Below are positions 6,628 through 42,223 of a stretch of 64,000 bases of DNA, one piece after another (positions within the stretch are counted from its first letter, which is position 1; every line of letters begins with the position of its first letter). The position numbers and the translations under genes are program-made. The notes beneath the pieces were generated by a model. The model made no database searches, was not told the DNA's origin, and was given only the letters and a program-made list of their open reading frames with translations. This DNA comes from Oculina patagonica (Eukaryota): assembly GCF_052425735.1 (NCBI RefSeq), contig NC_135761.1, forward strand, positions 38,688,001 through 38,752,000. Reading direction: 5' to 3'.

Positions 6628-8169
6628 TTTGTGGTAGATTTTTTAAGCCTACAAACAGAAAACCCCACAAAAATCTGTGGAAATTCTAAGAAGATAAGTG
6701 GTGATCCCATAAAGCCTGGTGCTTGCTCATTGAGAGGTTGCTGATTTTGTGCACCTCAATTGACGTAAATACGATAGGGAATCTTGAATATTCGCCGTTT
6801 TTGTTAAGCTCCTTTGATAATAAGCTTGACAAATACTGTTCTTCCTCCCACTTTAAAGGTCTCTGAATGTGCTTGGGCGTGCGATGCATTCTTTACCTGC
6901 CCTCTATACGCTTGTAGCTTTGTCTCCTAGACCCACAAAAGAAACCTATTTAGAGAACACATATTTTTAAAGAGAGCAAACTACTGGAAATTTGACTAAT
7001 TAGGACGGATCTCTGCCTAAATGTGCTACATTTATCTTTTAAAACGTCATGTTTTTTGTAATAATTGATCAATAAAACTGCATTGTATAGATTAAACTTT
7101 TCATTTATAAACATCTGTTCTTTCACCATTCTTTAACCACAAGGTAGGAAAATTAATAATATAATTAAAACCAGGCTTGCTCTCCAAAAAAACACCTAAA
7201 CAGGTAATAGGCATTCAAACACTCCTCTATGTCAACACCTCTTACCTAATAAGTAAAGTGATATGCTCATTCTCTCAATTGTAAAGATCTGCGATTCCTA
7301 CTAAATATTTCATATCTCACTTACTTCCTCTCAACCTCTTTCCAGTTTCCTTCTGGTCTGCTTTATGAAGAAATGCTCAACTTCTTTATCTTCTTTAATT
7401 CCTCCTCTAAATCAGTTAATAGTTCCTCGATTTGGTTTTTTATCAAGTCTCCACGTAGAGGCCTAAAGTGATAGCTTTGACAGACCACTGTTGTTGCATC
7501 TTTCCTTTCTGTTAGGTGTTTTTTTGTGGCTCTTTGGCCCTTAAGCTGTAGACGCCCATGCTTCTCTTGTCTTCTCTATAAAGGCCATTGAGTTGACATT
7601 TTGAAAGATTTTGCCTAGCCAGACCTGCTACAATTTATTGATTTCCGACAGTGGGAGAGTCAATTAGCTGGCTTCTGGTGATATCTTTGAAGGGGGTTGA
7701 GGCTATAAGTGGTTGTCCATTGTGTTTGATGCACTCTGCAATCTTCATGAGTGAAATTCTGGTCTGGAGGACTGGGTTTTCAATGAAAGGTTTTTGCTGT
7801 TGTGGTCTTTTCTGCGATTTCTTTAATTTCGAGGCAGCAGGCAACAATGACTTTGTTTGCTCTGATGTGTTTAGCGTATCGTGTTTGCGCTCACAGTGAG
7901 ATGAACTTCCTGTGGGTCGGAGTCAAGCATGTAAGAAGAGTGGACCTATTGTGAGGTGGGCGCCTCTGCTTTAATTTGGGAACTTTTAACTCTGGCAATT
8001 CTAACTCCTTTCCTATGTCTTTTTCCAACTGGACATCTTCAAAAACTAAGCTTAGCTTTCACTATTGTGGCTATCTCAGCTCTTGAGGTACTTGTGATTG
8101 ATGTCCCAGCATTGAAGGTTACTTAAAATATGTAAAATATGCGAAGGAAAATTAATTGATTTGGTGCTA

Positions 8170-8600
8170 CTTACTGACATGGTTCCATATTTCTTCTGCC
8201 TTATATCGCCTGAAATACTTTGAAAAACAAGGCTCTTCAGGTGATTCTGAAAATTGCTGTTCGTGCCATTTCTTAGTTAAACAATCCAACGTTGAATTAT
8301 ATTATTCATAAGAACCAAGCCACCACTGCCAAAAATATCATTTATGATATCATTTTATCATTTGTGAACGATTGTGAAAATCACAGTTTGCGACATTTGT
8401 CCTTGATGTTTCTTTGAGCGTGAACTTTACATACCGGTAACAATGACACCGAACTTGGGAAAACTTGGGCTAGAGCTTGTCGCGGTGCTTCTTCTGAATC
8501 AGTGCAATAACCCTTTAGGCTGACTTGCAAGCCAGGTACTTGAGTGAAGAGCTTTTGGAACAAAGTCAGGTGAGAAATCAATTCAATCATTTGGTAAAAT
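8170..8600 (-). mobile_element. MULE (Mutator) DDE transposase fragment
   Basis: YCTDSEEAPRQALAQVFPSSVSLLPVCKVHAQRNIKDK matches the MULE D...CxxH motif. Confidence 0.7.
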
Positions 8601-9149
8601 AGATTAAGATTACACATGTTCTCTTTGACCTCTAGGAGGAAACTCTTGAATTGGTTACCCTCTGACCAAAGGAACAAAATTGTATAATACCGCTTTCACC
8701 TCATTCTTTCCAGTAAGTGTCCAGAAATGGTTTGCTACCTCCTTAAGGCTCAACATCTTGGAGCTTCTAAAATCTTTTACTGGGAGGAAACCATAGAGTT
8801 TTCCACTTTAAGATGGGGTACATGTACCAGGTAAATATTATTCGATTTAATACAGGATTAGGAAAAAGTCAAAAGATAGATGCCTCGCGAGCAAAGACCG
8901 CATATTTTAAACAATTTTCAATCTGGTGAAGTTTTTTAATTATTTTTTGGTGTTGAAAAGAAACATTGGTGCTACCCACCCCTCCCCTTGAGTGGCCTGC
9001 AAGCAGGCTCACCTTGGAACACTGCACAAATAAAATGGGGCATGTGCGACTTCCTAGCAAAGCGATAGGTCCGGGAGGAGACTGGTGAAGAGGTGCCAAT
9101 AAAGTGAGCCTGCTTTGATTTTTTTCTGCTTTGATTGCTGTAAATGTTT

Positions 9150-10366
9150 CATTTCTGCTTTGCCCATGTGAGATGCCATTGGCCAAAAGGTGAGAAGGGT
9201 GAGAAAAATGTCAATCTGTTTTGTTTGATGAGGTGCAATCAGATCCTCAAGGAGTCAGTTTGCTGCAAGTTGTCCCATGTCGGGCGTAAAAAAACATCAA
9301 TATGGAGAGAGTTGAGTGCGTGTATTTGTAATTTTTTGTTAAAGTTGCAATCTGTTTCTGGTGTAATTTACAAGCTAAAAAAGATGATTGCTGAGCGACG
9401 ACAGCTTGTCTCGATCAGTTCCTTTCAGTACCGAATCTGATCGGCAATACTCTTTAAACTCCACGGAGACTTTTTGCTTCAACGCCGCCGGCAACTCTAC
9501 TGCGAGTTCAGCATGATTAAAAATACCATTTGCTGCAGCTTTCCACTCTGTAAAAGCAATTATTTTGACAATTGAAATGGTACTTGCTTCTTCCCGTGTT
9601 CTAACTTTTAACTTCCCACTTGGATACAGAATCAAAACCTTTACTCAAGTTTAACTTTGTGAGACAATATCTTCAACATTTAAAAGGTCTAGTCCCCAAT
9701 TGTCATTTGTTGCGTGAGTACTAGCTGTCCACCGGTGGATTTGTTGTTATCACTTGAGTCAAAAAGAATCTTTCTCAACAAAGGCTTTGGTCGTTTACGG
9801 CTTTCAATCCCCTCAGGATTGTCCAGGATCCCTTGCCCTTTTTGAGAGGTTTCTTCAGCAGAATTTTTTGACACTTTTCTTTGAGCAGGGCTTCGTTTGG
9901 GTGAAGAAACAGTTGAGGGAAGACAAAGCTTGAATAGGTCTCCACTTTCTTCATACTCCGTTCTGTAGCACATCAGCTAAAAATGAATACAGCTGGTGCA
10001 TATTTCTTTTTTTTTTTAAATTGCAACACAACAACATTCTTACAAAAGAAACTTACATTACTTACAAACACTAATGGCACATGCTACATTATTTCTTATT
10101 TTACGTGCACAAGCTTGGCAAACTCTGTCAGATTTATTCATGGAGAATGTAACTTTTAAACCAACATGTTTCCACAGTTTTGCGAGTATTACACTGATGA
10201 AACCTTTCTGCTTTGACGCTTGAAACGAATTTTCAGTTGCGATTGCATGAGTAGATTCTCCATATAGTACTTTCAATGAACACCCACACAGTCGGCAGAA
10301 ATCTCTAATCGAAGGAAGAAGAGGTTTTCTTCCACCCTCGTTGGTTTTCTTTAGTGTAACATTCAC
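9150..10366 (-). pseudogene. ZAD-like zinc-finger N-terminus of a decayed multi-exon TE protein (possibly Academ-type transposase)
   Basis: FCRLCG...SDRVCQACARKIRN (C4), followed by ORF pieces 9689-9973 and 9375-9635 with stops; family assignment tentative. Confidence 0.35.
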
Positions 10367-10545
10367 AACCGACGTTATGTCCCCATGTTAAAGTGCATGT
10401 TGTTGTGAAAGTTTGCATTTTCCCGGGACATCTAAAACTTAGAGTTATCCGCTTTCAATGCTTGTCACCTTTCCTGTCAAACTTCTACTTCCGTTGAACT
10501 TTAATTGGCTTATCAGTATTCCTGCGGTTTGCGGGGTTGGAAGTG
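10322..10545. repeat. Dispersed repeat; second diverged copy at about 20244-20400
   Basis: Shared GTGTAACATTCACAACC...TGCATGTTGTTGTGAAAGT...GACATCTAAAACTTA. Confidence 0.8.
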
Positions 10546-10589
10546 GAAAATTAGCAGTGATAAATTCAGGCTCACTTGCAACTGACGCC

Positions 10590-10770
10590 CTATCATTCAA
10601 TAACAAACAAATGCATTATACAGTGAAAACAATGAGAAGTCATAATCATCAAATAGAAAGTTATGAAATAAACAATGTATCACTCAGTTGCTTCGATGAT
10701 AAAAGGCATATATTTGATGGTATAAATACATGTACCAGTACATATACTTATGGCCATTACAAAAATATCA
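10590..10770 (+). mobile_element. Polinton/Maverick protein-primed DNA polymerase B, extreme C-terminal fragment
   Basis: KTMRSHNHQIESYEINNVSLSCFDDKRHIFDG...YTYGHYK, the LS.FDDKR...YGHY terminus of Polinton PolB. Confidence 0.75.
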
Positions 10771-10920
10771 AGATGGGGCTAAAGTACATTTCATTTTCAC
10801 AAACTTGTTTTTAATTTTTAAGCTTTTAGCAAAACATTTCTGCTGTAACTCACACTTAAAACGTCTAGGATAAGTTGTGACAAGTTAAAAAAAGCCACCA
10901 GAAACTTGGTGTGAGAAGAA

Positions 10921-11375
10921 GATATTTACATACATACATACATAAACTTTATTTGATTGTTCTAGTATCTCCGAATAACATACACTAATCTTAAGTATAA
11001 AATAGAAAAACTAACTGACATAAATAAATAGATATAACAAAAAGAATAATAATTCATTTTTATCTACAAAAGCGAAGAGATTGTCTATTTGTTCTAAAAT
11101 GTTTTGAATTTCTGGTAGTTTGTTCCATACTTTTGGGGCAAGATGACGGAAGGAGCAAATACCAAAGGTTTCTGTCCTAATGGCAGGTTGTTTGAGTTTG
11201 GCAAAGCTTCTAAGAAAATGGAAACCAGCATCACGCATCTGTAGATAAGGTCACAAATTGGACGGTGCAGCACCATTTAAGCATTTATGGACTGTAACTA
11301 ACATGTTCTGTACTCTTCTTTGTTCCAATGTAAGTATACGTAGTTTGCGCAGTAACTGATCATAGGTACTAGATT
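10921..11375 (-). mobile_element. 5'-truncated LINE (L2/CR1 group) 3' end
   Basis: STYDQLLRKLRILTLEQRR..HKCLNGAAP; FGICSFRHLAPKVWNKLPE; AATAAA followed by a (TATG)n tail near 10925-10950. Confidence 0.75.
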
Positions 11376-11377
11376 TC

Positions 11378-12212
11378 ACTTTCACTTTGTTTATAGCTCT
11401 TTCCACATGAATTCTTCCTGAAGCTATTTCTTGAGTGGCAATAACTTCTGAAGGGGTCTGTTGACTTCGTGAACCAAGAAATGGGGGGATATTCAGGCCA
11501 ACACCAATATGTTCAAGCAGGTCAGAAATGGTAAACCCCTTGTCAGCCGTCACCACATCACCTTGATCAAAAGGCAAGTCGAGAAACCCTGACCTTACTG
11601 TGAGCTCCCTATCTGAAATACTTCCTGCATAGAGTTGGGAAATAAATGTTATAGGGGTGCGATCCCAATCAGACTTTTAAATGTCGTATGGCTCTTGTAC
11701 GAAGAATAGGTTTCACTGTGTAAAACTAAGGAAGAAGGGGTCTGTCATTTGATCTCTTTTCCATGAATAATGATTGTTGTTTTAGGGAACTTATCCCTGG
11801 GGCATTGCTTTGTCTATTGCCTCTCTGTTTGGCCTGATGTTAAGAAAGCCAAAAGTACAAAAGCCAAAAAGCCAAAAGTACAAAAAAATTGATCCAGGAA
11901 ATACAAATCCTGTTTACTGTAGAAACATATATCCTGAATCTGTGAGCTAAATCAAGTTTAAATAAGCCAAGTCTCATTCTCTCAAGCATCAGGAAAAATT
12001 TGTCCAGGGTACTAAGTTCTCGACATGGGCTGGGTTCATTTTCCAAAAAAGCCATCTGCATTAATTGATGATGTAAACTGTAGGTCCTCCTTCGTACTGT
12101 TAACATAACAATGTAAGAACCATTCTCACCTGGGTTAAAAAAATTGTAGCAGGCCAGAAGGGTTTGGAAATTAGGAAATCCCATGTAAAAAGTGATATTT
12201 CAGTCCAAGTCT
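11378..12212 (-). pseudogene. ISL2EU/PIF-Harbinger transposase, HTH and DDE_Tnp_4 part (3' half, split by piggyBac)
   Basis: FYMGFPNF; LERMRLGLFKLDLAHRFRIYVSTV; GDVVTADKGF..LNIPPF..IASGRIHVERAINKVK; several frameshifts. Confidence 0.85.
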
Positions 12213-12888
12213 TTAACTCTTTCGGTGCGGTTGTCAAGTAAACTCGACATTCGATTTCGTGACTCCCAGTGCGGTTGTCGAGTTTTCTCGACAAAATAAA
12301 CATTCCCAAACTCCTCTTCGAAATTGGCTTCTATAGGGGGATTTGAGCATTGAATTCGCTGTGTATACCCTCCCAAACTGCAAGCGTGACTAGATGTGCC
12401 AATTTTTGACTGAGTGAACCAGTTTGGGCAAATATTTCGCTGGAGTTCAAATTTCAACCGAAGCGAAGGCGAAGGCGTGATTTGGACGCCATGATGATCA
12501 TGTTTCGCTTCGTCATAACAATGAATGTTAAGCTTTTAACTGCTATCTTTATCGAGCACGTACGCAAATGGAGTCGTGGGATGAAATTGCTTGCGAAACC
12601 TTATGATTCAAGGCATAGGTATGTTCTTCATTCCTTTACTAGGAGTGTTTATTGCGTAGAGGAACTTGTGAGAGCATAATTTTTGTGTTTGCTAATTTTA
12701 GCTCATAAACTACAGGCTATATAATCTGTTGATTCACCTCAATAAAGTCATTTGACTTCAAGTATTAGCCAAGAGAGCTGTTTACTGTGTGAAATACCTT
12801 AGCTTAGTCCTTTCAAGCGCCTATCGTGCGTAAATTCGGTAAAGCAATTTGCAACCTTTTCTTGTTTACATTTTGCTGAGATTTAAAA

Positions 12889-14667
12889 ATGGCGACAGCA
12901 AGGTCAAATCGAACCTACACCACCGAAGAATGTGCAGCGGCGGTTATGGGTGACTCTGACTCCGAAATGAGCGATTTTGACCCAGACTCGAGTGGCGATG
13001 AAGAAGAGATTGAAGCAGAGGATTTGCACGAGGAAAACGATGACGCTAGCGCGACTGATTCGGAAGAAGACGATGAGACGGAATTAGAACAACAACCAGC
13101 AGGTCACACACGACACCAACGAATTGTTTGGGAGAACGTGAGTATTTATGATAACATAGATCAGACCTGGACTCCCCCATTTCAGCAGAGGACTGGTGTT
13201 CTAGTGGACACTGTTAATTTCCAGCCCGTGAATTATTTCAAGCTGTTCTTTCCTGACGATCTTTTTCGTCTAATCTCTGAGCAAACAAACCTGTTTGCAG
13301 AACAGTTCTTTGACGACCCGTCAGATTTTACCCGACACTCTCGATTTCAAAAGTGGACAGATACAAGTCCAAATGAAATTCAGGCATTTGTAGCTTTACA
13401 AATCGCGATGGGACTAAATTGCAAACCATCAGTAAAGGATTATTGGCGCAAATACTGGCTTACTGAAACCAAGTTTGGAAATGTGATGTCCAGGGATCGC
13501 TACCTTCTTTTATCCACTTTTTTGCATTTCTCAAACAACGAGCACCGTGTTCACCGTGGAGAGGAGGGTTTCAATCCATTATTCAAAATACAACCAGTCT
13601 TGGACATTGTCAATCCCTTGTATGAAAATGTCTATGGCCCTGGCAAAAACCTGTGCATTGATGAGAGCATGATCAAATTCAAGGGGCGAATTTATTTTAG
13701 ACAATACTTACCTGCAAAGCCTACCAAGTGGGGCATAAAAGTTTTTGTTTTGTGCGAGTCTGACAGTGGCTATGGATTTAAATTTGAAGTCTATACAGGC
13801 AAGGAGAGTTTTATGAGACAAAAAGGAGTCCCTCTTTCTGAACAGGTTGTTTTGTCATTACTGGACGGCTATGAAAACAAAGGACATGTCGTGTACATGG
13901 ATAATTTCTACAGTAGTCCAAACCTTTACCTGGCCTTGAAGGAAAAGGGAATAGGGGCATGTGGTACAGTTATAGCAAACAGGAAACAAATGCCTGAAGG
14001 CTTGAAACCAAAAAATCTTCCACTAAAGAAAGGTGACCCCCCAAAGTTTATGCATTCGGGTGACCTTGTGGCTTGCGCTTGGCATGACACTAAGCGAGTA
14101 AATTTTCTAAGTACCGTGCACAATGACTTAACAATTGACAAGGAAATCAGACACAAAGGTTCTGAAGGAGGCAAGCGGACAGTGGAGAAACCTGTTGTGG
14201 CTGAACAATACAACAACAACATGGCAGGCGTGGACAGGATGGATCAACTTCTTGGAAGTTATGCATATCCTCATAAATCCCAGAAGTGGTACCAACCTAT
14301 TTACCACAGAGTCAGAGAGATTGCTCTTGTCAATGGTTACATCCTCTATAAGAAGGATAAAAACAACAGGGATGAACAGATTTTGCCTCCAGAGAAATTC
14401 AGAGAAAAGGTCATTGATGGCCTGCTTTCAAATTGGAATATGACACAGAAGAAAGGGAGACCATCTCTGCAGCCAGAGGATAGCCGCCTGACTCAGCGTC
14501 ACTTTCCTGGAAAGTATGATGATACAAAATACTTTCCAGACTGTATTGTTTGCAGTGACAGAAAGAACAAAAAAAGGAAACAGACTCATTTTTATTGCAA
14601 ACAATGTGGTAAACCCATGTGTGTGGTTCCCTGCTTTGAGAAATATCATACTATTCAAAACTTGTAA
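12889..14667 (+). CDS. piggyBac transposase (PGBD4-like, DDE_Tnp_1_7), 592 aa
   Basis: Acidic N-terminus; IDESM (D258), KPTKWGIK, YMDNFY (D338), GVDRMDQ (D449); C-terminal Cys-rich domain CIVC..CKQC..CVVPCFEKYH. Confidence 0.97.
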   Translation: MATARSNRTYTTEECAAAVMGDSDSEMSDFDPDSSGDEEEIEAEDLHEENDDASATDSEEDDETELEQQPAGHTRHQRIVWENVSIYDNIDQTWTPPFQQRTGVLVDTVNFQPVNYFKLFFPDDLFRLISEQTNLFAEQFFDDPSDFTRHSRFQKWTDTSPNEIQAFVALQIAMGLNCKPSVKDYWRKYWLTETKFGNVMSRDRYLLLSTFLHFSNNEHRVHRGEEGFNPLFKIQPVLDIVNPLYENVYGPGKNLCIDESMIKFKGRIYFRQYLPAKPTKWGIKVFVLCESDSGYGFKFEVYTGKESFMRQKGVPLSEQVVLSLLDGYENKGHVVYMDNFYSSPNLYLALKEKGIGACGTVIANRKQMPEGLKPKNLPLKKGDPPKFMHSGDLVACAWHDTKRVNFLSTVHNDLTIDKEIRHKGSEGGKRTVEKPVVAEQYNNNMAGVDRMDQLLGSYAYPHKSQKWYQPIYHRVREIALVNGYILYKKDKNNRDEQILPPEKFREKVIDGLLSNWNMTQKKGRPSLQPEDSRLTQRHFPGKYDDTKYFPDCIVCSDRKNKKRKQTHFYCKQCGKPMCVVPCFEKYHTIQNL

Positions 14668-14860
14668 TTTTTTATTTTTTTCCTCACAATCAGTGATATT
14701 TCACCAGTAGAAAAGATAAAAGTGATACCTTAGACAAGTAATGAGTCAAAGACAGTTAAAATAAGCTAAGAGTGTTTTATTTTTCATGTATTGAGTGTGC
14801 AGCTATTTTTTATTCACATATTTCCCATTTTGCAAAAAAACATGATTCAGAGGCCACACC

Positions 14861-15579
14861 CATAACATAAATATTGGTGGCATTTTAAAGATTAAAACTA
14901 CAATATATTCTTATAACCTCTTTATTCACAAACATTATTTAGTATTGTATTAGGTTTTAGGTATTTTAACCAAATTATCAATTTTTACTAAAATAATTGT
15001 GCCAAAAAAGGACTTATAATTACGAAATATATCCTCGTAGCATTTTTCATGGTGTCACGTGACTGATCATGTGACTAATTAGCACAAACATCACATGTAA
15101 CGATGCGAAATTTTATGTACTACCACTTCTGTAAAAATCATATTAATACTTCTAATAGAAAAAGAGATATAGTCAAATTACTAAAGGTGTTTTTTTCGGT
15201 GATTTTTTTGGGAAAGAATTCACATAACATAAATATTGGTGGATTTTTATAGGTTAAAAAACTACAATATATTCTAATAACCTTATTATTCACAAACATT
15301 ATTTAGTATTGTATTAGGTTTTAGGTATTTTAATCAAGTTATAAATTTTTACTGTAAGAGCTGTGCCAAAAAAGGCATTATAATTACAAAATATATCCTC
15401 CTCACAGTTTTCATGGTGTCACGTGACTGGTCATGTGACTAATTAGCATAAATATTACATGTAACGAAGCAAAATTTTATGTACTACCACTTCTGTAAAA
15501 ATCATTTGAATACTATTAATAGAAAAAGAGATATAGTCAAATTACTGAAGGTGGTTTTTTCTGTGATTTTTTTGGGAAA
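14861..15579 (+). repeat. Two diverged tandem copies of a ~362-bp unit in the piggyBac 3' region
   Basis: CATAACATAAATATTGGTGG starts at 14861 and 15223; colinear to GATTTTTTTGGGAAA. Confidence 0.92.
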
Positions 15580-15635
15580 AAAGTCAGCACTGGGAGGGAC
15601 TTGCACGAAAAAAAAGTCAGCACCGAAAGAGTTAA

Positions 15636-16011
15636 ATCGTGCTATGCCAAACTGGCTTTAGAGAAGTTTGTTGACGTTCTTTAAAAGTTGTTTGTTTTCG
15701 AGCTCAAGTGAATTGACTTGTTGCTCTAACTTCGCGATGTGCGCACGTAAATTGTTGATTTTATCAGCAGTGGAAGTATCACTGTCTGCCTCACTCACGC
15801 CACTGAAGGATGGCATTTCAGCCGATGAAGATGGAGGTTGTGACCGCTTATGTGGCGATTTCCTCTTGGGAGATGGTGCAAACCATTGAAAAATTGAGGG
15901 AACAGCATGATGTTTTAAAACTCGGCAACCTGCTAAGTCTGTCTGAAAATCATTTGGCTTGAAATGCCATGAGCAGATCTTAGTTCGCTTCGTGATCTGG
16001 AATGGAGCCAA
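15636..16011 (-). pseudogene. THAP domain plus coiled coil, 5' half of the ISL2EU/Harbinger transposase
   Basis: ICSWHF...AVPSIF THAP signature; in frame with ORF 11840-12184 once the piggyBac is removed. Confidence 0.85.
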
Positions 16012-16481
16012 GTCTATGTGAGGGACAAGCTTTTAAACTAGATTGATAGGTAAATAACATTCTACAATACGCTCCAATTAATGATTAAAGACATGAACAA
16101 CGAAATGTCAAAAATGATAAAGAAACTTAACAAAGCTGTAATACTTGAATCGTAATGTAAACGAAATGATTTCTTAAAGTTCCTTTTCTTTGTTTTTCTT
16201 TGAACATTCATAACACTTTCATTACACTTTTCGGCACATCCGCACCTTACAAAAGTTGATGTAAAATCACTCCTGATGGACTTCTGATAAGTGTCCCTTC
16301 AAGTTGTGTGCAGTGTAATGGGCCAATAAAGTACCCCCGATACCCATGAATTACATGCCTATAGGTATGTGTATTAGTACGTAAGCCAATCATAGAAGCT
16401 TTCAAAAGCTGGTGTACTACTGCTTCTTGTACCCCCCCCCGTCTGTCTCCTTTTCCAATCCTTTGCTTCTTTATATTTGTG

Positions 16482-36328: not shown

Positions 36329-37375
36329 TTAGGTTAAAATAACGTTTGATTTGACATGAAAAGGATGTGGCTCCTTGTCATTTCCGTGAAATATATATTT
36401 AAGTCTCATTCGTCTGGCGAATTCTTCGAAATCACGCAACAATTGTTGCCTGATTTTATTTTCATTTGTCACGGGTGTTTCGATAAATTTAAGCCCTTTT
36501 GCTAACACGCTGACTTGGTGGTCAGTTAATGTGTTTTCTGAAAGGTTTTTAAGGTATTTTTCATTTTTCTCCCTTTCTGTGGTAATACATTTCTGTATTG
36601 TATTTTTTCTACGTTTTTTGCGTTTGATATTTTTGGATAGCCTTTTTGCTTCAGTGGGTTTAGCGGCTGATTGTTCAGAGATGACACTGTTGTACTGTTC
36701 AACATGTTTATTATCACTCTGAAAACGTGTACAAATGATTTCTGTCAATTTCTCAATTTTATGCTCTAGTTTATCGAGCCTAGTGACATGAGTATTTGCA
36801 ATGTTTCGCAGGGGCGAACGCGATCTCTCACGTACATTGTTTTGTGATCGAGACTTGGCAATACTAGCCTTTTCAAGCTTTTTAGTGTGACTAATAAGTC
36901 TACGCTTATGGTAGCGCACTAGGGCGCTAACAAATTGTTCTTCTGCGTGACTTTTGATAGCGCTAATTTCCTGTCGGAAAGTTTCGTCCGGCGTTACGTT
37001 CGCCTTTGCCTTATATTGAAGCGACTTAGGGCAAGTCTTTTGTTCTAAATGTCTCTCCAGTTTAAGTATGGAGGTTTCTGTCTTTTGCTTCTTGAATTCA
37101 ACAGCGCTGGTGGCGTCTTCGTGTTTCCTTTTCCTTGGCTGCCGTGACTGGCTATTCCTTGGAAGGTTTTCTTGTGGAAGGTGTTGGCCTTCGTTGTTTG
37201 ACTGCTTGGCTAGTTGAGCTTTGTGCCTTGGCTCAAGTTGTGATGCTGGAGGGCTCGCCTCTATTTCTGGCTCCGAGTCTAGGTTCGGATCAGGGAACAA
37301 GGTTATGTCCTCGTCCGGATTTGGACGGTATTCTGGTGTTTTTGGTGCCCGCAATGGTGTTTCATAAGCTGACAT
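36329..37375 (-). mobile_element. Penelope-like element ORF N-terminus (348 aa, truncated before RT)
   Basis: KNLSENTLTDHQVSVLAKGLKFIETP...DFEEFARRMRLKYIF..HPFHVKSN. Confidence 0.8.
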
Positions 37376-37383
37376 CTTTGCAG

Positions 37384-38271
37384 ATAAAGGAAGTTAGAAA
37401 ACGCATACAAGAGATTATCGACGGACCTGGATCAATGGGAGGGTAACGGACAGTCTGGCACACATTGGAATTAGAGGGATTCAGAGTCCCAAGAATGGTG
37501 GCACAGGAAATTATTAGAGAGCTTGATCCTGAAGGAACAGAATTGCGTAAGAGACATTGCTTAAAAAGGAGAGAATACCATAACCCAGGTCCCAACTATG
37601 CGTGGCATGTCGATGGTTACGATAAGCTTAAGCCCTGGGGATTCCCAATTCATGGTTGTATAGATGGCTATAGTTGACGTATCATGTGGTTGGAGGTGGC
37701 ACGTTCAAATAATCTACCAGAGTACCCAGCAATGTATTATGTAGACGCAGTGAGGGATCTAGGAGGCTGCCCTGTTGAAGTTGTAACTGACTTGGGAACT
37801 GAAAATGGTTTACTGGCATCTATTGAGGGATGGTGGTCATTCTATTCCAAGAACAGATCATCATGCTGGAGAAATTTTTTTCAAGATTTGGAAACGGATG
37901 GCAAAATTGACATGACCTCTGAAATGAATAAAGAATGTTTGTGGTATTGTTTCTCTGGGGTGCTCCAAGCAGATTGCGATGCTGTCAAAGAACATTGGAA
38001 CACTCATTATATTAGACGTTCTAGGCATAATACAGTAAGAGGCAGACCAGATTCATTATTTTTTTTGCCAGAGTATCATGGTGCTGTAAACAATCTTTTG
38101 TCAAGTGTTGAACCTAATGAAATTGAGTGTGTGTCCCAACAAATCATTGTCACACAAGGCACTGACGAATATCAAGAATATTTCGACTATGTTGTTGAAG
38201 GTCTCGACATTGAAGTTCCTACTACTTGGAAAGAAGCTTTGCAGCAATATGAAAAGTTGACACATTGCTGA
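37384..38271 (+). pseudogene. IS3EU-like integrase-core DDE transposase, 5'-truncated, 2 in-frame stops
   Basis: RREYHNPGPNYAWHVDGYDKLKPWGFPIHGCIDGYS*RIMWL..SNN.P..TDLGTEN..WNTHYIR. Confidence 0.85.
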
Positions 38272-39152
38272 ATTCGGATTCTCTCCATAAATCTGCGCCC
38301 TTATCCAAGCAAGGTACACATTATTTTTACTACAAGATCTGTTTCATAGCAGTATCTCTTACCACACACATGTATTTCAAAGAACACTTGAATCATACTG
38401 GCTGTAAATGTGCTGTCAAAAATGTAACTATTGTGGATGGTTTTGAGATTTTATGCTGACTGACGATGAGCCACAAATAATTTGTAAGAGGAGTACTACA
38501 GAGGTACTACATATTGTAAAGTTACTACATATTACAAACTGGCCTTAGTGATGCCCTTGTTTACATTGACCCTAAAAAAAGAAACTGATATATGTAAAAG
38601 GCTGATAATGTACATGGTTGGGAAGTGACATTCTGATTCTAAATTTAAGGCCTTTGAAACTGTCAATGAAAATAATTCTTCTTTAATAAATATCATTTAT
38701 TAAATCAACAATAACACTATTAATTTATTCTCACGTATATTGGGTGTCTTCCCTTTTGCAACTTAACATTTAGCAGTTAAAATTGTACAATGTTGTTCTC
38801 AACCATTGAAAGCACACTGGTATTATGCTCTCCTTTTACTGCTATAGTTTACATTCATCAACGGAAAACAGGAACAAAACTAATAATAGGTGCAATTATA
38901 CCACAAATGCATCTGCAAATGACTTACTTCATTGTCAATACATCAGTTGACAGAACAAAACGCAGCTGAACAGCAGCTTCTCTATTAAACGCAAACATAA
39001 GAAAAACTTTCAAACGACTAGTGGTCAGGTAGAATCTCAAACCTGTCCCTTTTTGTGGAGTGCACAAACATGGTAACACAAAACCTCTCATTCAAGGGCA
39101 AGAAATGCTGTCAAAAGTAGTAAAGACATGGTAGTGTTGCAACAATTATAAT

Positions 39153-40817
39153 TTATCGTCGCCCAAAAGCCTGGCCCTTGCAATACGCTAATAGAAAGAC
39201 ACGTGTAAAATCTTCAGGCACCTCCATATGCTTCACTGGAAATGTCACAGTTCTCCCGCAAGCAGAGACAACAGGGAAACATATGGTGTGACGTGGATTT
39301 CTCTGCGCACAGTCATGATCAAACATAACAGTGATGGAAAGATCATCGCCATTAACTGGCTTGTGTTGCTGTCCTGTGAGCCACCCTAGAACATCTGGTG
39401 GGTTAAGCACTGCAGACTGAAAGTTCCCAGGGAGCTCGTCTGCCTCTGACTGGTTTGTTTCTGTTGGTTCTCTTTCTTGAAGCTTGTCTTTGTTATTCCA
39501 AGCCAGCATTTCGGAGTAGCCCGACAAGTTTTCATCCTCAAATCTCATAAGCAAATCATGGAAATTATCAATGACTGCTTCCTCGATTTCTCTCCTGGAG
39601 CTGCCCTCTTGTGAATATTCAGGCTTCAACACTGAAACAATGTAATTTGCATCAACAATGTTTGCATTAGAATGTTTCACAAAAAGTGGCTTGCAAAGAT
39701 CAGCATTGCCCTTTACCAGACTCTCCAAACCATAGAGCTCAAGACCTTTTCCAAACTCTTTGAGAAACAAGGACCTTCTACTGATGAGACTCACCATCAC
39801 TGTACCAGTTATGTCATTTACATGCTCTAAATCAACAATGCCTGTATAGCCATGCTCCAAAATGGTATCCTGATGGGTAACTGGATTTTCTCTGATACTT
39901 TCCAACAATGATTTCTCGCTAGGGGTCAAGTGGATGTCTTCCTTCAAGTCATTCACATCAATATCAGGACTGACCAGCATCTGAAATGCACACTCAGTTA
40001 AAAAGCAGGGAGGTGGTCCTCCTTGCACAAGACTGACTGCTACAATTTGCCCACAGGCTAGAAAAAAGCCATTATGAACATGTAACATGGAGTCTATGGG
40101 CACACCGTCCGGGAAAAAAACCTTTCCCATTTCACGTACGGCATTTCCTAGGAATTCTTTGGCCATAGCACCGCTGTCAATGCCGTCTTCCCCTGCAAAG
40201 TGTACTCGCAAGAGTTTTGCGGGAGAGCTTTTTTTTGATTCCCGCTGCCAAATCTTCAGTTGCCTCTGGAAAGATGAACCTCTCCTGACTACAAGAAAAA
40301 ATTGATCAGATTCGTCCACAGAGCTCCCAAGGGATCTTAAAAGCTGTTCGATACTTGTAAACTGTGTCAGCTTCTCTTCAGGGAACTTTGGTACTGTTGT
40401 TGTATTGGTCATAGCAGCAACAGGGCCAATACTAAGCATGGGTGAATCCTCTTGGATCCTAACATGGCCACTTGTAGGATTTGAAGCACTTTTGCTATCA
40501 TCTATTCCAGCATCAAAATGGCCTGCTTCCTGGTCAAATTCAAACTGGAGGCTCTTTGCTAGCTCTTCGTCTCCATCGATTTCTGTTTTTGCCTTCTTTC
40601 CTGGTCTCGACTGCAACTCTTCAACTGACATTTCACTTTCACTGCTGTTCCCCTCTTGGTGACTCTTTTCAGCACTATTGATGTCTGTGGTTGTACATAG
40701 GTAGAGGACAATTCTCTTGTAGTCTTTTCCTATTTCTTCGTGATACCTTTGAAGGATGAAAAATTCAACAGTTCCTGGCAGGAATTGGGCTTGTTTCCCA
40801 TCTTCAAAGACCAGCAT
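39153..40817 (-). CDS. HECT-domain E3 ubiquitin ligase-like (G2E3-type), large terminal exon, 554 aa open
   Basis: VHFAGEDGIDSGAMAKEF, GQIVAVSLVQGGPPP, FPVVSAC (catalytic Cys position), C-terminal FG; DEELAKSLQ MIU-like motif. Confidence 0.8.
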   Translation of the reverse strand: MLVFEDGKQAQFLPGTVEFFILQRYHEEIGKDYKRIVLYLCTTTDINSAEKSHQEGNSSESEMSVEELQSRPGKKAKTEIDGDEELAKSLQFEFDQEAGHFDAGIDDSKSASNPTSGHVRIQEDSPMLSIGPVAAMTNTTTVPKFPEEKLTQFTSIEQLLRSLGSSVDESDQFFLVVRRGSSFQRQLKIWQRESKKSSPAKLLRVHFAGEDGIDSGAMAKEFLGNAVREMGKVFFPDGVPIDSMLHVHNGFFLACGQIVAVSLVQGGPPPCFLTECAFQMLVSPDIDVNDLKEDIHLTPSEKSLLESIRENPVTHQDTILEHGYTGIVDLEHVNDITGTVMVSLISRRSLFLKEFGKGLELYGLESLVKGNADLCKPLFVKHSNANIVDANYIVSVLKPEYSQEGSSRREIEEAVIDNFHDLLMRFEDENLSGYSEMLAWNNKDKLQEREPTETNQSEADELPGNFQSAVLNPPDVLGWLTGQQHKPVNGDDLSITVMFDHDCAQRNPRHTICFPVVSACGRTVTFPVKHMEVPEDFTRVFLLAYCKGQAFGRR

Positions 40818-41410
40818 ATATTCTTCTTCTTCTATGTAGAGTTGGCTTTGGTATTTTCAATTTTACTTAGCGTGCTATAACGTGCTGTTCAACAGATGTA
40901 ACATTTATTCCCTGAAGAAGTGTAAAATTATTGGAGACGAAAAGCGACAAATAAACAAAGAGATGTTAACAATCATGAAATGAAGGTTCTCTTTGGCTCA
41001 CTAGTTCTAATTAAAAAAGAAAATTACATCTAATTGGCCATAGGTGAGTGCAGGTGAGCGATAACGAGGGCAATACCTCACACTGATGGAGCATGGAGGT
41101 TTCTTGAGTTACACCAGCCCACAAGTTTAATACAGATAGCAATTGACAACGATGGCTTTTCTGTCGTGTGTTCTACGTGTCTTTGAGCAAATAAGTATGG
41201 CCTAACCTTTTACATCCTCTGATATTCGTGACTGATCATGAGCTGACGATGTGGAAGCAAACCCTTGAGGCACAAATAAAAGACAAAGCACACGGTAAAT
41301 TTAACATTTAGCGTTGTCATGAAGCGAATGAAAACAGGCTTCTTGAGATTAAAAAGTATAAGAAATATCAATTTTCGCATCATATGCAAAGTAATAGTTA
41401 TCAAATGTTA

Positions 41411-41499
41411 CCTTGACCACATCTGGCACAAAAGTTTGCCGTTGACACAGCCTCAGCGCCACAGTTTGAACAAAACATATTGGAGCTGGACGCGGCCAT
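41411..41499 (-). CDS. Probable first exon of the HECT gene: zinc ribbon
   Basis: MAASSSNMFCSNCGAEAVSTANFCARCGQG followed by a GTAAC donor. Confidence 0.55.
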
Positions 41500-41558
41500 G
41501 TTGGATTCATTCCCAACAACTCGTGCAAACTCAACACAGGTAGTGTCCAGGGCCCACG

Positions 41559-41926
41559 GCCGTGAGCTGTTTTTGTTTTTGCCGTGAGCTTTTTGTTTTT
41601 GCCGTGGAGTTTTTGTTTTTGCCGTGTGCTTTTTGGTTTTGCCGTGGCTTTTTGTTTTTGCCGTGGTGTTTTTGTTTTTGCCGTGGTGTTTTTGGTTTAA
41701 CCGTGAGCTTTTTGGTTTTGCCGTGAGCTTTTTGGTTTTGCCGTGGTGTTTTTGGTTTTGCCGTGAGCTTTTTGGTTTTGCCGTGGTGTTTTTGGTTTTG
41801 CCGTGAGCTTTTTGGTTTGGCCGTGAGCTTTTTGATTTTGCCGTGAGCTTTTTGATTTTGCCGTGAGCTTTTTGGTTTTGCCGTGAGCTTTTTGGTTTTG
41901 CTGTGAGCTTTTTGGTTTTGCCGTGA
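41559..41926. repeat. Subterminal minisatellite, about 18 copies of 20 bp (GCCGTGAGCTTTTTGGTTTT)
   Basis: Directly visible; ends 18 bp from the element terminus. Confidence 0.95.
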
Positions 41927-42223
41927 CAGTTATGGGCCACCGTACCATCTCCCTTACTAACCCTTGGACTCAACCCTCTCGCATTTCTTTTTATTTTTTA
42001 CCAGGAGTTATTTGCCCTCTGTTCACTTATTGCATTCCATCGTTGCTAAGCAAGTTGTGTTATCTCCAAAATAACAATTGTGAGAAGCGTGGGGGAGAAC
42101 AAGTTTCATTTTTGTCCTGTCAGTTTAGTATGCAGAGCAAAATATCAAGAAAGAACGTATTTGTGCCTTGGGGGATTAGTTATAATTTCTACCAAATTTC
42201 CTATTCAAAGGAAATTTGAAAGC

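Follow-up and report, generated by a model that had tools for sequence, protein, structure and literature searches.

We analysed a 64-kb stretch of DNA (hereafter the window; C4:38,688,001-38,752,000 of a 529-Mb assembly) that carries, at positions 12213-15635, a piggyBac-like element (PBLE) with 3,415 bp between two copies of TTAA. An original prediction, made from the letters of the window, had described this element as a complete, potentially active and probably very recent piggyBac insertion. Its completeness was borne out, as the termini, the target-site duplication (TSD), the protein domains, the catalytic residues and the fold all agree, and the description proved right in all checkable details. 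The features of the element are given below in window coordinates. Two names recur in them: organism B, a sister taxon in which the same site is empty, and L052, a contig that holds a full-length relative.

12213-12216, no strand: left copy of the TTAA TSD; organism B has a single TTAA at its empty site
12217-12228, + strand: left terminal inverted repeat (TIR), CTCTTTCGGTGC, 12 bp, 100% complementary to 15620-15631; 37 other TTAA-flanked ends in the genome are alike
12225-12293, + strand: left subterminal direct repeats, 2 x 25 nt, 84% alike, with a short palindrome in each (repeat search)
12229-12888, + strand: 5' untranslated region (UTR) and presumed promoter, with no open reading frame (ORF); 83.9% identical to the L052 copy, versus 89.4% for the transposase ORF
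12263-12272, + strand: left inner inverted repeat, CTCCCAGTGC, 34 bp inward of the TIR
12889-14667, + strand: transposase ORF, 592 amino acids (aa), uninterrupted, the longest ORF of the window
13660-13662, 13900-13902 and 14233-14235, + strand: codons of D258, D338 and D449, the triad of the transposase
14542-14649, + strand: Cys-rich domain, C552-H587, matching zf-Tnp_2
14861-15557, + strand: tandem unit of ~364 bp in the 3' UTR, two copies, 90% alike; three copies in the L052 relative
15577-15623, + strand: right subterminal direct repeats, AAAAAAGTCAGCAC twice (repeat search)
15587-15596, - strand: right inner inverted repeat, CTCCCAGTGC, 23 bp inward of the TIR
15620-15631, - strand: right TIR, the inverted partner of 12217-12228
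15632-15635, no strand: right copy of the TTAA TSD, read from the window sequence

An intact element and its transposase

According to Bouallegue et al. 2017, a PBLE consists of two TIRs, two UTRs and a transposase (PMC5381638). The element has TTAA on both sides, with a single TTAA at the empty site, and two TIRs in which the first C of the terminus is present. The window contains exactly two instances of TTAA followed by the 12-nt end CTCTTTCGGTGC, one inverted relative to the other (0.05 expected by chance). This exact inverted pair upheld the perfect TTAA duplications and TIRs of the original prediction. The 10-bp inner repeat CTCCCAGTGC likewise has just two occurrences in the window, which again form an inverted pair (0.06 expected).

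The uninterrupted 592-aa ORF on the plus strand was also found as predicted. A Pfam search detected DDE_Tnp_1_7 with an E value of 1.6e-89 over profile positions 2-349 of 349. In a HMMER alignment to the transposase of Trichoplusia ni piggyBac (6x67, native numbering), D268, D346 and D447 lie opposite D258, D338 and D449, and D452 faces D450 of 6x67. The Pfam match, this alignment and the fold agree on the domain and on the predicted DDD triad. The full C-terminal Cys-rich zinc finger that had been claimed matches zf-Tnp_2 above the cut-off (25.3 bits; cut-off, 24), and its residues C552, C555, C570, C573, C582 and H587 are invariant in 31 full-length relatives. Columns that are at least 90% conserved among these 31 relatives were kept in 94 of 95 cases, the sole change being Y136F. 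We modelled the transposase with AlphaFold2 (mean predicted local distance difference test score, 80.9; the acidic N terminus is disordered at residues 25 to 75). The best PDB matches of the model were piggyBat 9c0f and piggyBac 6x67, with target-normalised template modelling (TM) scores of 0.73 to 0.74, and Tn5 transposase was the distant next fold match.

Among solved structures, piggyBat of Myotis lucifugus is the best match (9c0f; E value, 2.9e-58; target-normalised TM score, 0.74). It has the same domain order and a C-terminal Cys-rich finger, although the two transposases are only ~29% identical. Named database relatives, of the PGBD4-like clade, are labelled "piggyBac transposable element-derived protein 4-like". 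The T. ni element (IFP2) resembles the window element in its TTAA duplication, its ~590-aa DDD transposase with a Cys-rich C terminus, and its short TIRs with inner repeats at unequal distances, which are 34 and 23 bp here; terminal repeat plus inner repeat with unequal spacing is the known layout of T. ni piggyBac (PMC5381638). The two differ in sequence (24% identity), in the terminus (CCCT in T. ni, CTCT here) and in length. The window element measures 3.4 kb instead of 2.5 kb because of its 676-bp leader and its ~960-bp trailer with the 364-bp tandem duplication.

Coral PBLEs have been described in Acropora, where Wang et al. 2010 reported AmiPB1-6 and short nonautonomous elements termed CMITEs (PMC2872659). 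AmiPB1-6 have TIRs of 13 to 16 bp, ORFs of 543 to 602 aa and TTAA-flanked MITEs (miniature inverted-repeat transposable elements), one family of which has its TIR in common with an autonomous element (PMC2872659). By the published description, which is what we compared here rather than protein sequences, all AmiPB ends begin with CCC[T/A]T and the CMITEs measure ~100 bp (PMC2872659), whereas the ends of the window element begin with CTCT and its MITEs measure ~690 bp. The element is thus of an ordinary kind that would not surprise a specialist, with a modestly unusual terminus; what sets it apart is that it is whole, single-copy and absent from the same site in a close relative.

The empty site and the age of the insertion

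The insertion splits a minus-strand gene, parts of which lie on both sides of the element.

11254-12184, - strand: downstream part of a decayed Harbinger-type gene (DDE_Tnp_4, 11254-11577; HTH_Tnp_4, 11840-12184)
15658-16011, - strand: upstream part of that gene, likewise decayed, with its THAP-like N terminus (weak match, 22.4 bits, under the cut-off of 23.9)

This split gene is a Harbinger-type (Harbinger/PIF) relic. It contains stop codons, and positions 11700-12216 are unique in the genome. Only 17 ORFs of at least 130 aa are found in the 64 kb, 13 of them on the minus strand, opposite to the element. The claim that almost everything else in the region has decayed was roughly right, given so few long ORFs and neighbours of the element that are fragments of the Harbinger-type gene. 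The original prediction added that, if the locus were a piRNA cluster, the element would be a newly trapped one in the sense, non-silencing orientation; for this idea the analysis covered the strands of the ORFs just given.

To follow the insertion in other samples, we mapped Logan contigs of four sequencing runs (X1, X2, X7 and X11) to positions 11700-16100. In the run search, X1 had 95% of the words; a 2017 study contributed several more runs of this species, all at low coverage, and runs of other taxa had only 5 to 8%. X1 is probably the assembly's own sample. Its contigs cover both junctions with no difference, and there was no sign of an empty allele in this individual, the depth being equal on the flanks (19 to 23) and on the element (19 to 21). 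In X2, which comes from an independent study of the same species, a contig crosses the right junction (15602-15752) with 0 differences, and X7 yielded inner pieces identical to the element. At least two independent samples of the window's species carry the insertion.

Conversely, in X11, the run of organism B, both flanks are covered and nothing maps over 12288-15521. Past 12216, two contigs switch to ATCGTGCTATGCCAA, the letters of window 15636-15650, and another two begin at 15632. The site in organism B is empty, precise and has one TTAA. Of its two haplotypes, the first shows 2 substitutions and 1 indel relative to 775 bp of the window flanks (~99.6% identity), and the second, ~8% diverged, is likewise empty. 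The simplest reading is that the insertion is very recent, since a sister taxon with ~99.6% identical flanks lacks it at this site: it would be younger than the split from the near-identical haplotype (~0.3 to 0.4%). The recent insertion that had been predicted was thereby borne out. The assembly itself offers no empty site (nothing else matches the left flank, and the right one matches only an unrelated repeat at 384-519) and no near-identical sister copies with which to date the insertion.

An empty site could also arise if an older, shared insertion had been excised precisely in organism B. Footprint-free return to a single TTAA is established for T. ni piggyBac, and the two histories look alike at the site. 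Ancestral absence is the simpler explanation because both organism B haplotypes, including the ~8% diverged one, are empty, and we consider excision an improbable account. Were it true, mobility itself would be demonstrated.

Copy number, relatives and selection

A count of copies, suggested along with the original prediction, gave one full copy in the 529-Mb assembly, with broken nearest relatives. The next DNA match, at C4:41.566-41.573 Mb, is broken and 77 to 85% identical in pieces. At the protein level, the nearest are three decayed relatives on the same chromosome (59 to 63% aa identity). The remaining piggyBac genes of the genome, of which ~30 are open, are just 29 to 37% identical and belong to other families.

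The mapped runs also held sequences that are absent from the assembly. Contigs of X1, X2 and X7 are 91 to 97% identical to parts of the ORF (12858-13055, 13700-13899 and 14149-14494). X2 and X7 contributed ORF-like pieces in this identity range, and X1 a rearranged piece of ~200 bp (13700-13899); one of the variant contigs has a 58-bp replacement and a 5-bp insertion. These pieces may represent further diverged copies that segregate in the species.

A word search with the transposase returned a 346-aa protein, 86% identical to its N-terminal half, which led to contig L052 of the ENA assembly ERZ25067872. In this coral-like assembly, a full-length relative lies at 7324-11129 of the contig and is 85% identical to the window element. 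Flanked by TTAA at each end, it shares the CTCT termini save for a single mismatch in its right repeat, and a 1-bp deletion, opposite window position 13905, disrupts its frame. The flanks are unrelated to those of the window element and match the window's genome at C2:43.0435-43.0444 Mb with 71 to 76% identity, where the element is absent. The window and L052 insertions are non-orthologous members of one family, because their flanks differ and those of L052 correspond to a place without the element.

The target region of L052 has a peculiarity of its own: positions 7100-7330 contain a tandem duplication of ~126 bp. Its first unit consists of the left flank, one TTAA and, with 2 mismatches, 31 bp of the right flank, and so corresponds to an empty site; the element sits in the second. 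Either this is a true local duplication or the assembler collapsed a heterozygous insertion. In the 3' region, the L052 counterpart of the tandem units spans 9973-11080, and in every ~364-bp unit a palindrome with CACGTG adjoins TCATGTGAC. The duplication of the unit is older than the split of the window and L052 copies.

Comparison of the two copies gave a dN/dS of 0.136 (0.086 in the catalytic core) and a dS of 0.41. Identity is highest in the ORF (89.4%), followed by the leader (83.9%) and the trailer (76.2%). The silent divergence of the element is about that of the single host flank compared, which is 71 to 76% identical. These values fit a working lineage of very low copy number that has long persisted by vertical descent under purifying selection.

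Two other histories have been considered for such a solitary, well-kept gene. A domesticated PGBD is expected to be single-copy, to occupy an orthologous position across species and to have an ORF under selection (PMC5381638). The element might accordingly be a piggyBac-derived host gene of the PGBD type, kept for a cellular function, and the one full copy in 529 Mb and the dN/dS of 0.136 speak for this. Such a low ratio, however, is equally expected in a live transposon lineage, where only working copies propagate. The element keeps intact TIRs at both ends as well as its TSD, the sister taxon has an empty site, and the relative in the other genome is non-orthologous and frameshifted. The original prediction had linked domestication to a single copy fixed at an orthologous site; the single copy was found, whereas the shared site was not. 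With the organism B site empty and the L052 relative at a non-orthologous locus, we rejected domestication, which we regard as very hard to sustain.

The other history is a recent horizontal transfer into the species. It would explain one intact copy without close relatives, and the nearest relatives within the genome (59 to 63% aa or 77 to 85% nucleotide identity) are indeed broken. Yet the divergence from the L052 copy (dS 0.41; UTRs 76 to 84% identical) approximates that of the host flank (71 to 76%), which fits vertical descent, and both old broken relatives and a CTCT-ended MITE family reside in the genome. Transfer drew no support from the one host locus compared with the L052 genome, and there is little probability in its favour.

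The CTCT terminus, the MITE family and mobility

The original prediction had pointed out that the element terminates in CTCT rather than CCCT. The CC[C/T]T terminal motif is regarded as a piggyBac hallmark (PMC2872659), and it is absent from both the window element and the L052 copy, which end in CTCT. Only the first C of the terminus is highly conserved (PMC5381638), and variants such as CACTA, CCCTC, CCCTT and CCCAT are on record (PMC10813416). We treated CC[C/T]T as a variable and not a defining feature of PBLEs, because other surveys list variants such as CACTA. The 12-nt end gave only chance primer matches in the literature.

The first 126 bp and the last 65 bp of the element match ~35 short elements in the genome at 77 to 85%. 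We cut out 22 of these MITEs; they measure ~690 bp, have ends of the form CTCTTTCG[G/C]TGC and, with the exception of three in which one TTAA is mutated, each lie between two TTAA copies. In a pattern search, TTAA plus CTCTTTCG[G/C]TGC was found as a left end 38 times in the genome, versus 0 for the reversed control. Besides the element, 37 ends of MITEs or fragments share the CTCT terminus, which confirms that the terminus was read correctly. CTCT is the true, functional end of the lineage, because 38 TTAA-plus-CTCT ends, mostly of MITEs, stand against none in the control. It is also a derived state: whereas the window lineage has CTCTTTCG, the relatives L061 and L063 have canonical CCCTTTCA ends at 55 to 57% protein identity.

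The MITEs fall into two subtypes, which differ at TIR position 9, G or C (loci L004-L027, for example L008 at 934-1626). Nine of the 22 read CGGTGC, as does the element, and 13 read CGCTGC and show the corresponding change at the opposite end. Distances of the 22 aligned MITEs to their majority sequence range from 1 to 7.4%, with 99.4% identity in the closest pair. Mean pairwise identity is 96.5% in the C subtype and 93.7% in the G subtype, which makes the C subtype the younger subfamily. No autonomous element with a C-type end was found in the assembly. The window element is the only visible candidate for driving MITEs with identical ends, because it is the sole intact enzyme of its lineage in the assembly.

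Movement of the family is seen in the empty site of organism B, in the L052 copy at another locus and in MITEs at 37 sites. By analogy with piggyBat and T. ni piggyBac, the transposase is expected to use its Cys-rich and DNA-binding domains to bind the CTCT-type terminal repeats and the inner repeats. It would then cleave at the TTAA borders by DDD-catalysed hydrolysis and hairpin formation, and the element would reinsert at another TTAA while the donor site is restored. A cut-and-paste element of this kind, seldom gaining copies, would leave what we observe, one copy at a new place. The MITE family (~37 members of ~690 bp) may be mobilised by the element or by a near relative.

Together, these observations lead us to regard the element, with a probability of about 85%, as an autonomous PBLE with all its parts intact, a young TTAA insertion in a dead THAP/Harbinger-type gene, and a member of a long-selected, very low-copy lineage. 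That it is also live, at about one copy per genome, and the present driver of the young ~690-bp MITEs is a more tentative proposal, to which we give somewhat less than even odds.

Several points weigh against these readings. With a single full copy, the assembly lacks the burst of near-identical copies that would prove activity, and the run search gave no RNA run that contained the element. The age of the insertion is read from Logan contigs, which show presence and not absence, and from a distance between organism B and the window's species gauged from flank identity alone. Beyond the first ~20 nt, the MITE ends are just 78 to 85% like those of the element. Both ends of the element read CGGTGC where those of the younger MITE subfamily read CGCTGC; at least some of the amplification may therefore be the work of another variant. 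Finally, an intact-looking piggyBac can be inactive, Yabusame-1 being cited as such (PMC5381638).

The last point bears on a further reading, in which the element is whole but immobile, a young fossil silenced in a repeat-rich region or crippled in a way that cannot be seen. The single copy in the assembly, the run search that returned no RNA run with the element, the precedent of an intact but inactive piggyBac (PMC5381638) and the setting in a repeat graveyard, with 13 of 17 long ORFs on the other strand, are all in keeping with it. Set against these are the conserved residues, none of which is lost but Y136F, the perfect ends, an insertion younger than the ~0.3 to 0.4% haplotype split, and the additional 91 to 97% pieces in X2 and X7, which hint at further polymorphic copies. 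We hold the fossil to be unlikely, though worth keeping in mind.

If the element is live, it would supply a native cnidarian transposase and an end pair usable for coral transgenesis, as well as a natural test of how far piggyBac transposases need the CCCT terminus. To our knowledge, native genetic tools are wanting in stony corals, and the element, whose transposase is intact, whose ends are defined and which shows evidence of recent movement, offers them a concrete candidate. The element moreover offers a case of a cut-and-paste transposon that would have lasted over a dS of ~0.4 at about one intact copy per genome under purifying selection, and it documents that CTCT works as a terminus in a clade where CCCT is what the relatives have.

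The surroundings of the element are rich in transposon remains. Transposase matches lie at 77 places in the genome, 48 of them on chromosome C4, where nearly all fall at ~24 to 54 Mb and most are broken, which makes this stretch of one chromosome arm a very large graveyard of piggyBac and other transposons. Elsewhere in the window, at 36329-41973, long ORFs (348, 554 and 190 aa) run on the minus strand; apart from a zinc ribbon, Pfam matches nothing in them, and they adjoin an integrase-core fragment on the plus strand (37684-38268).

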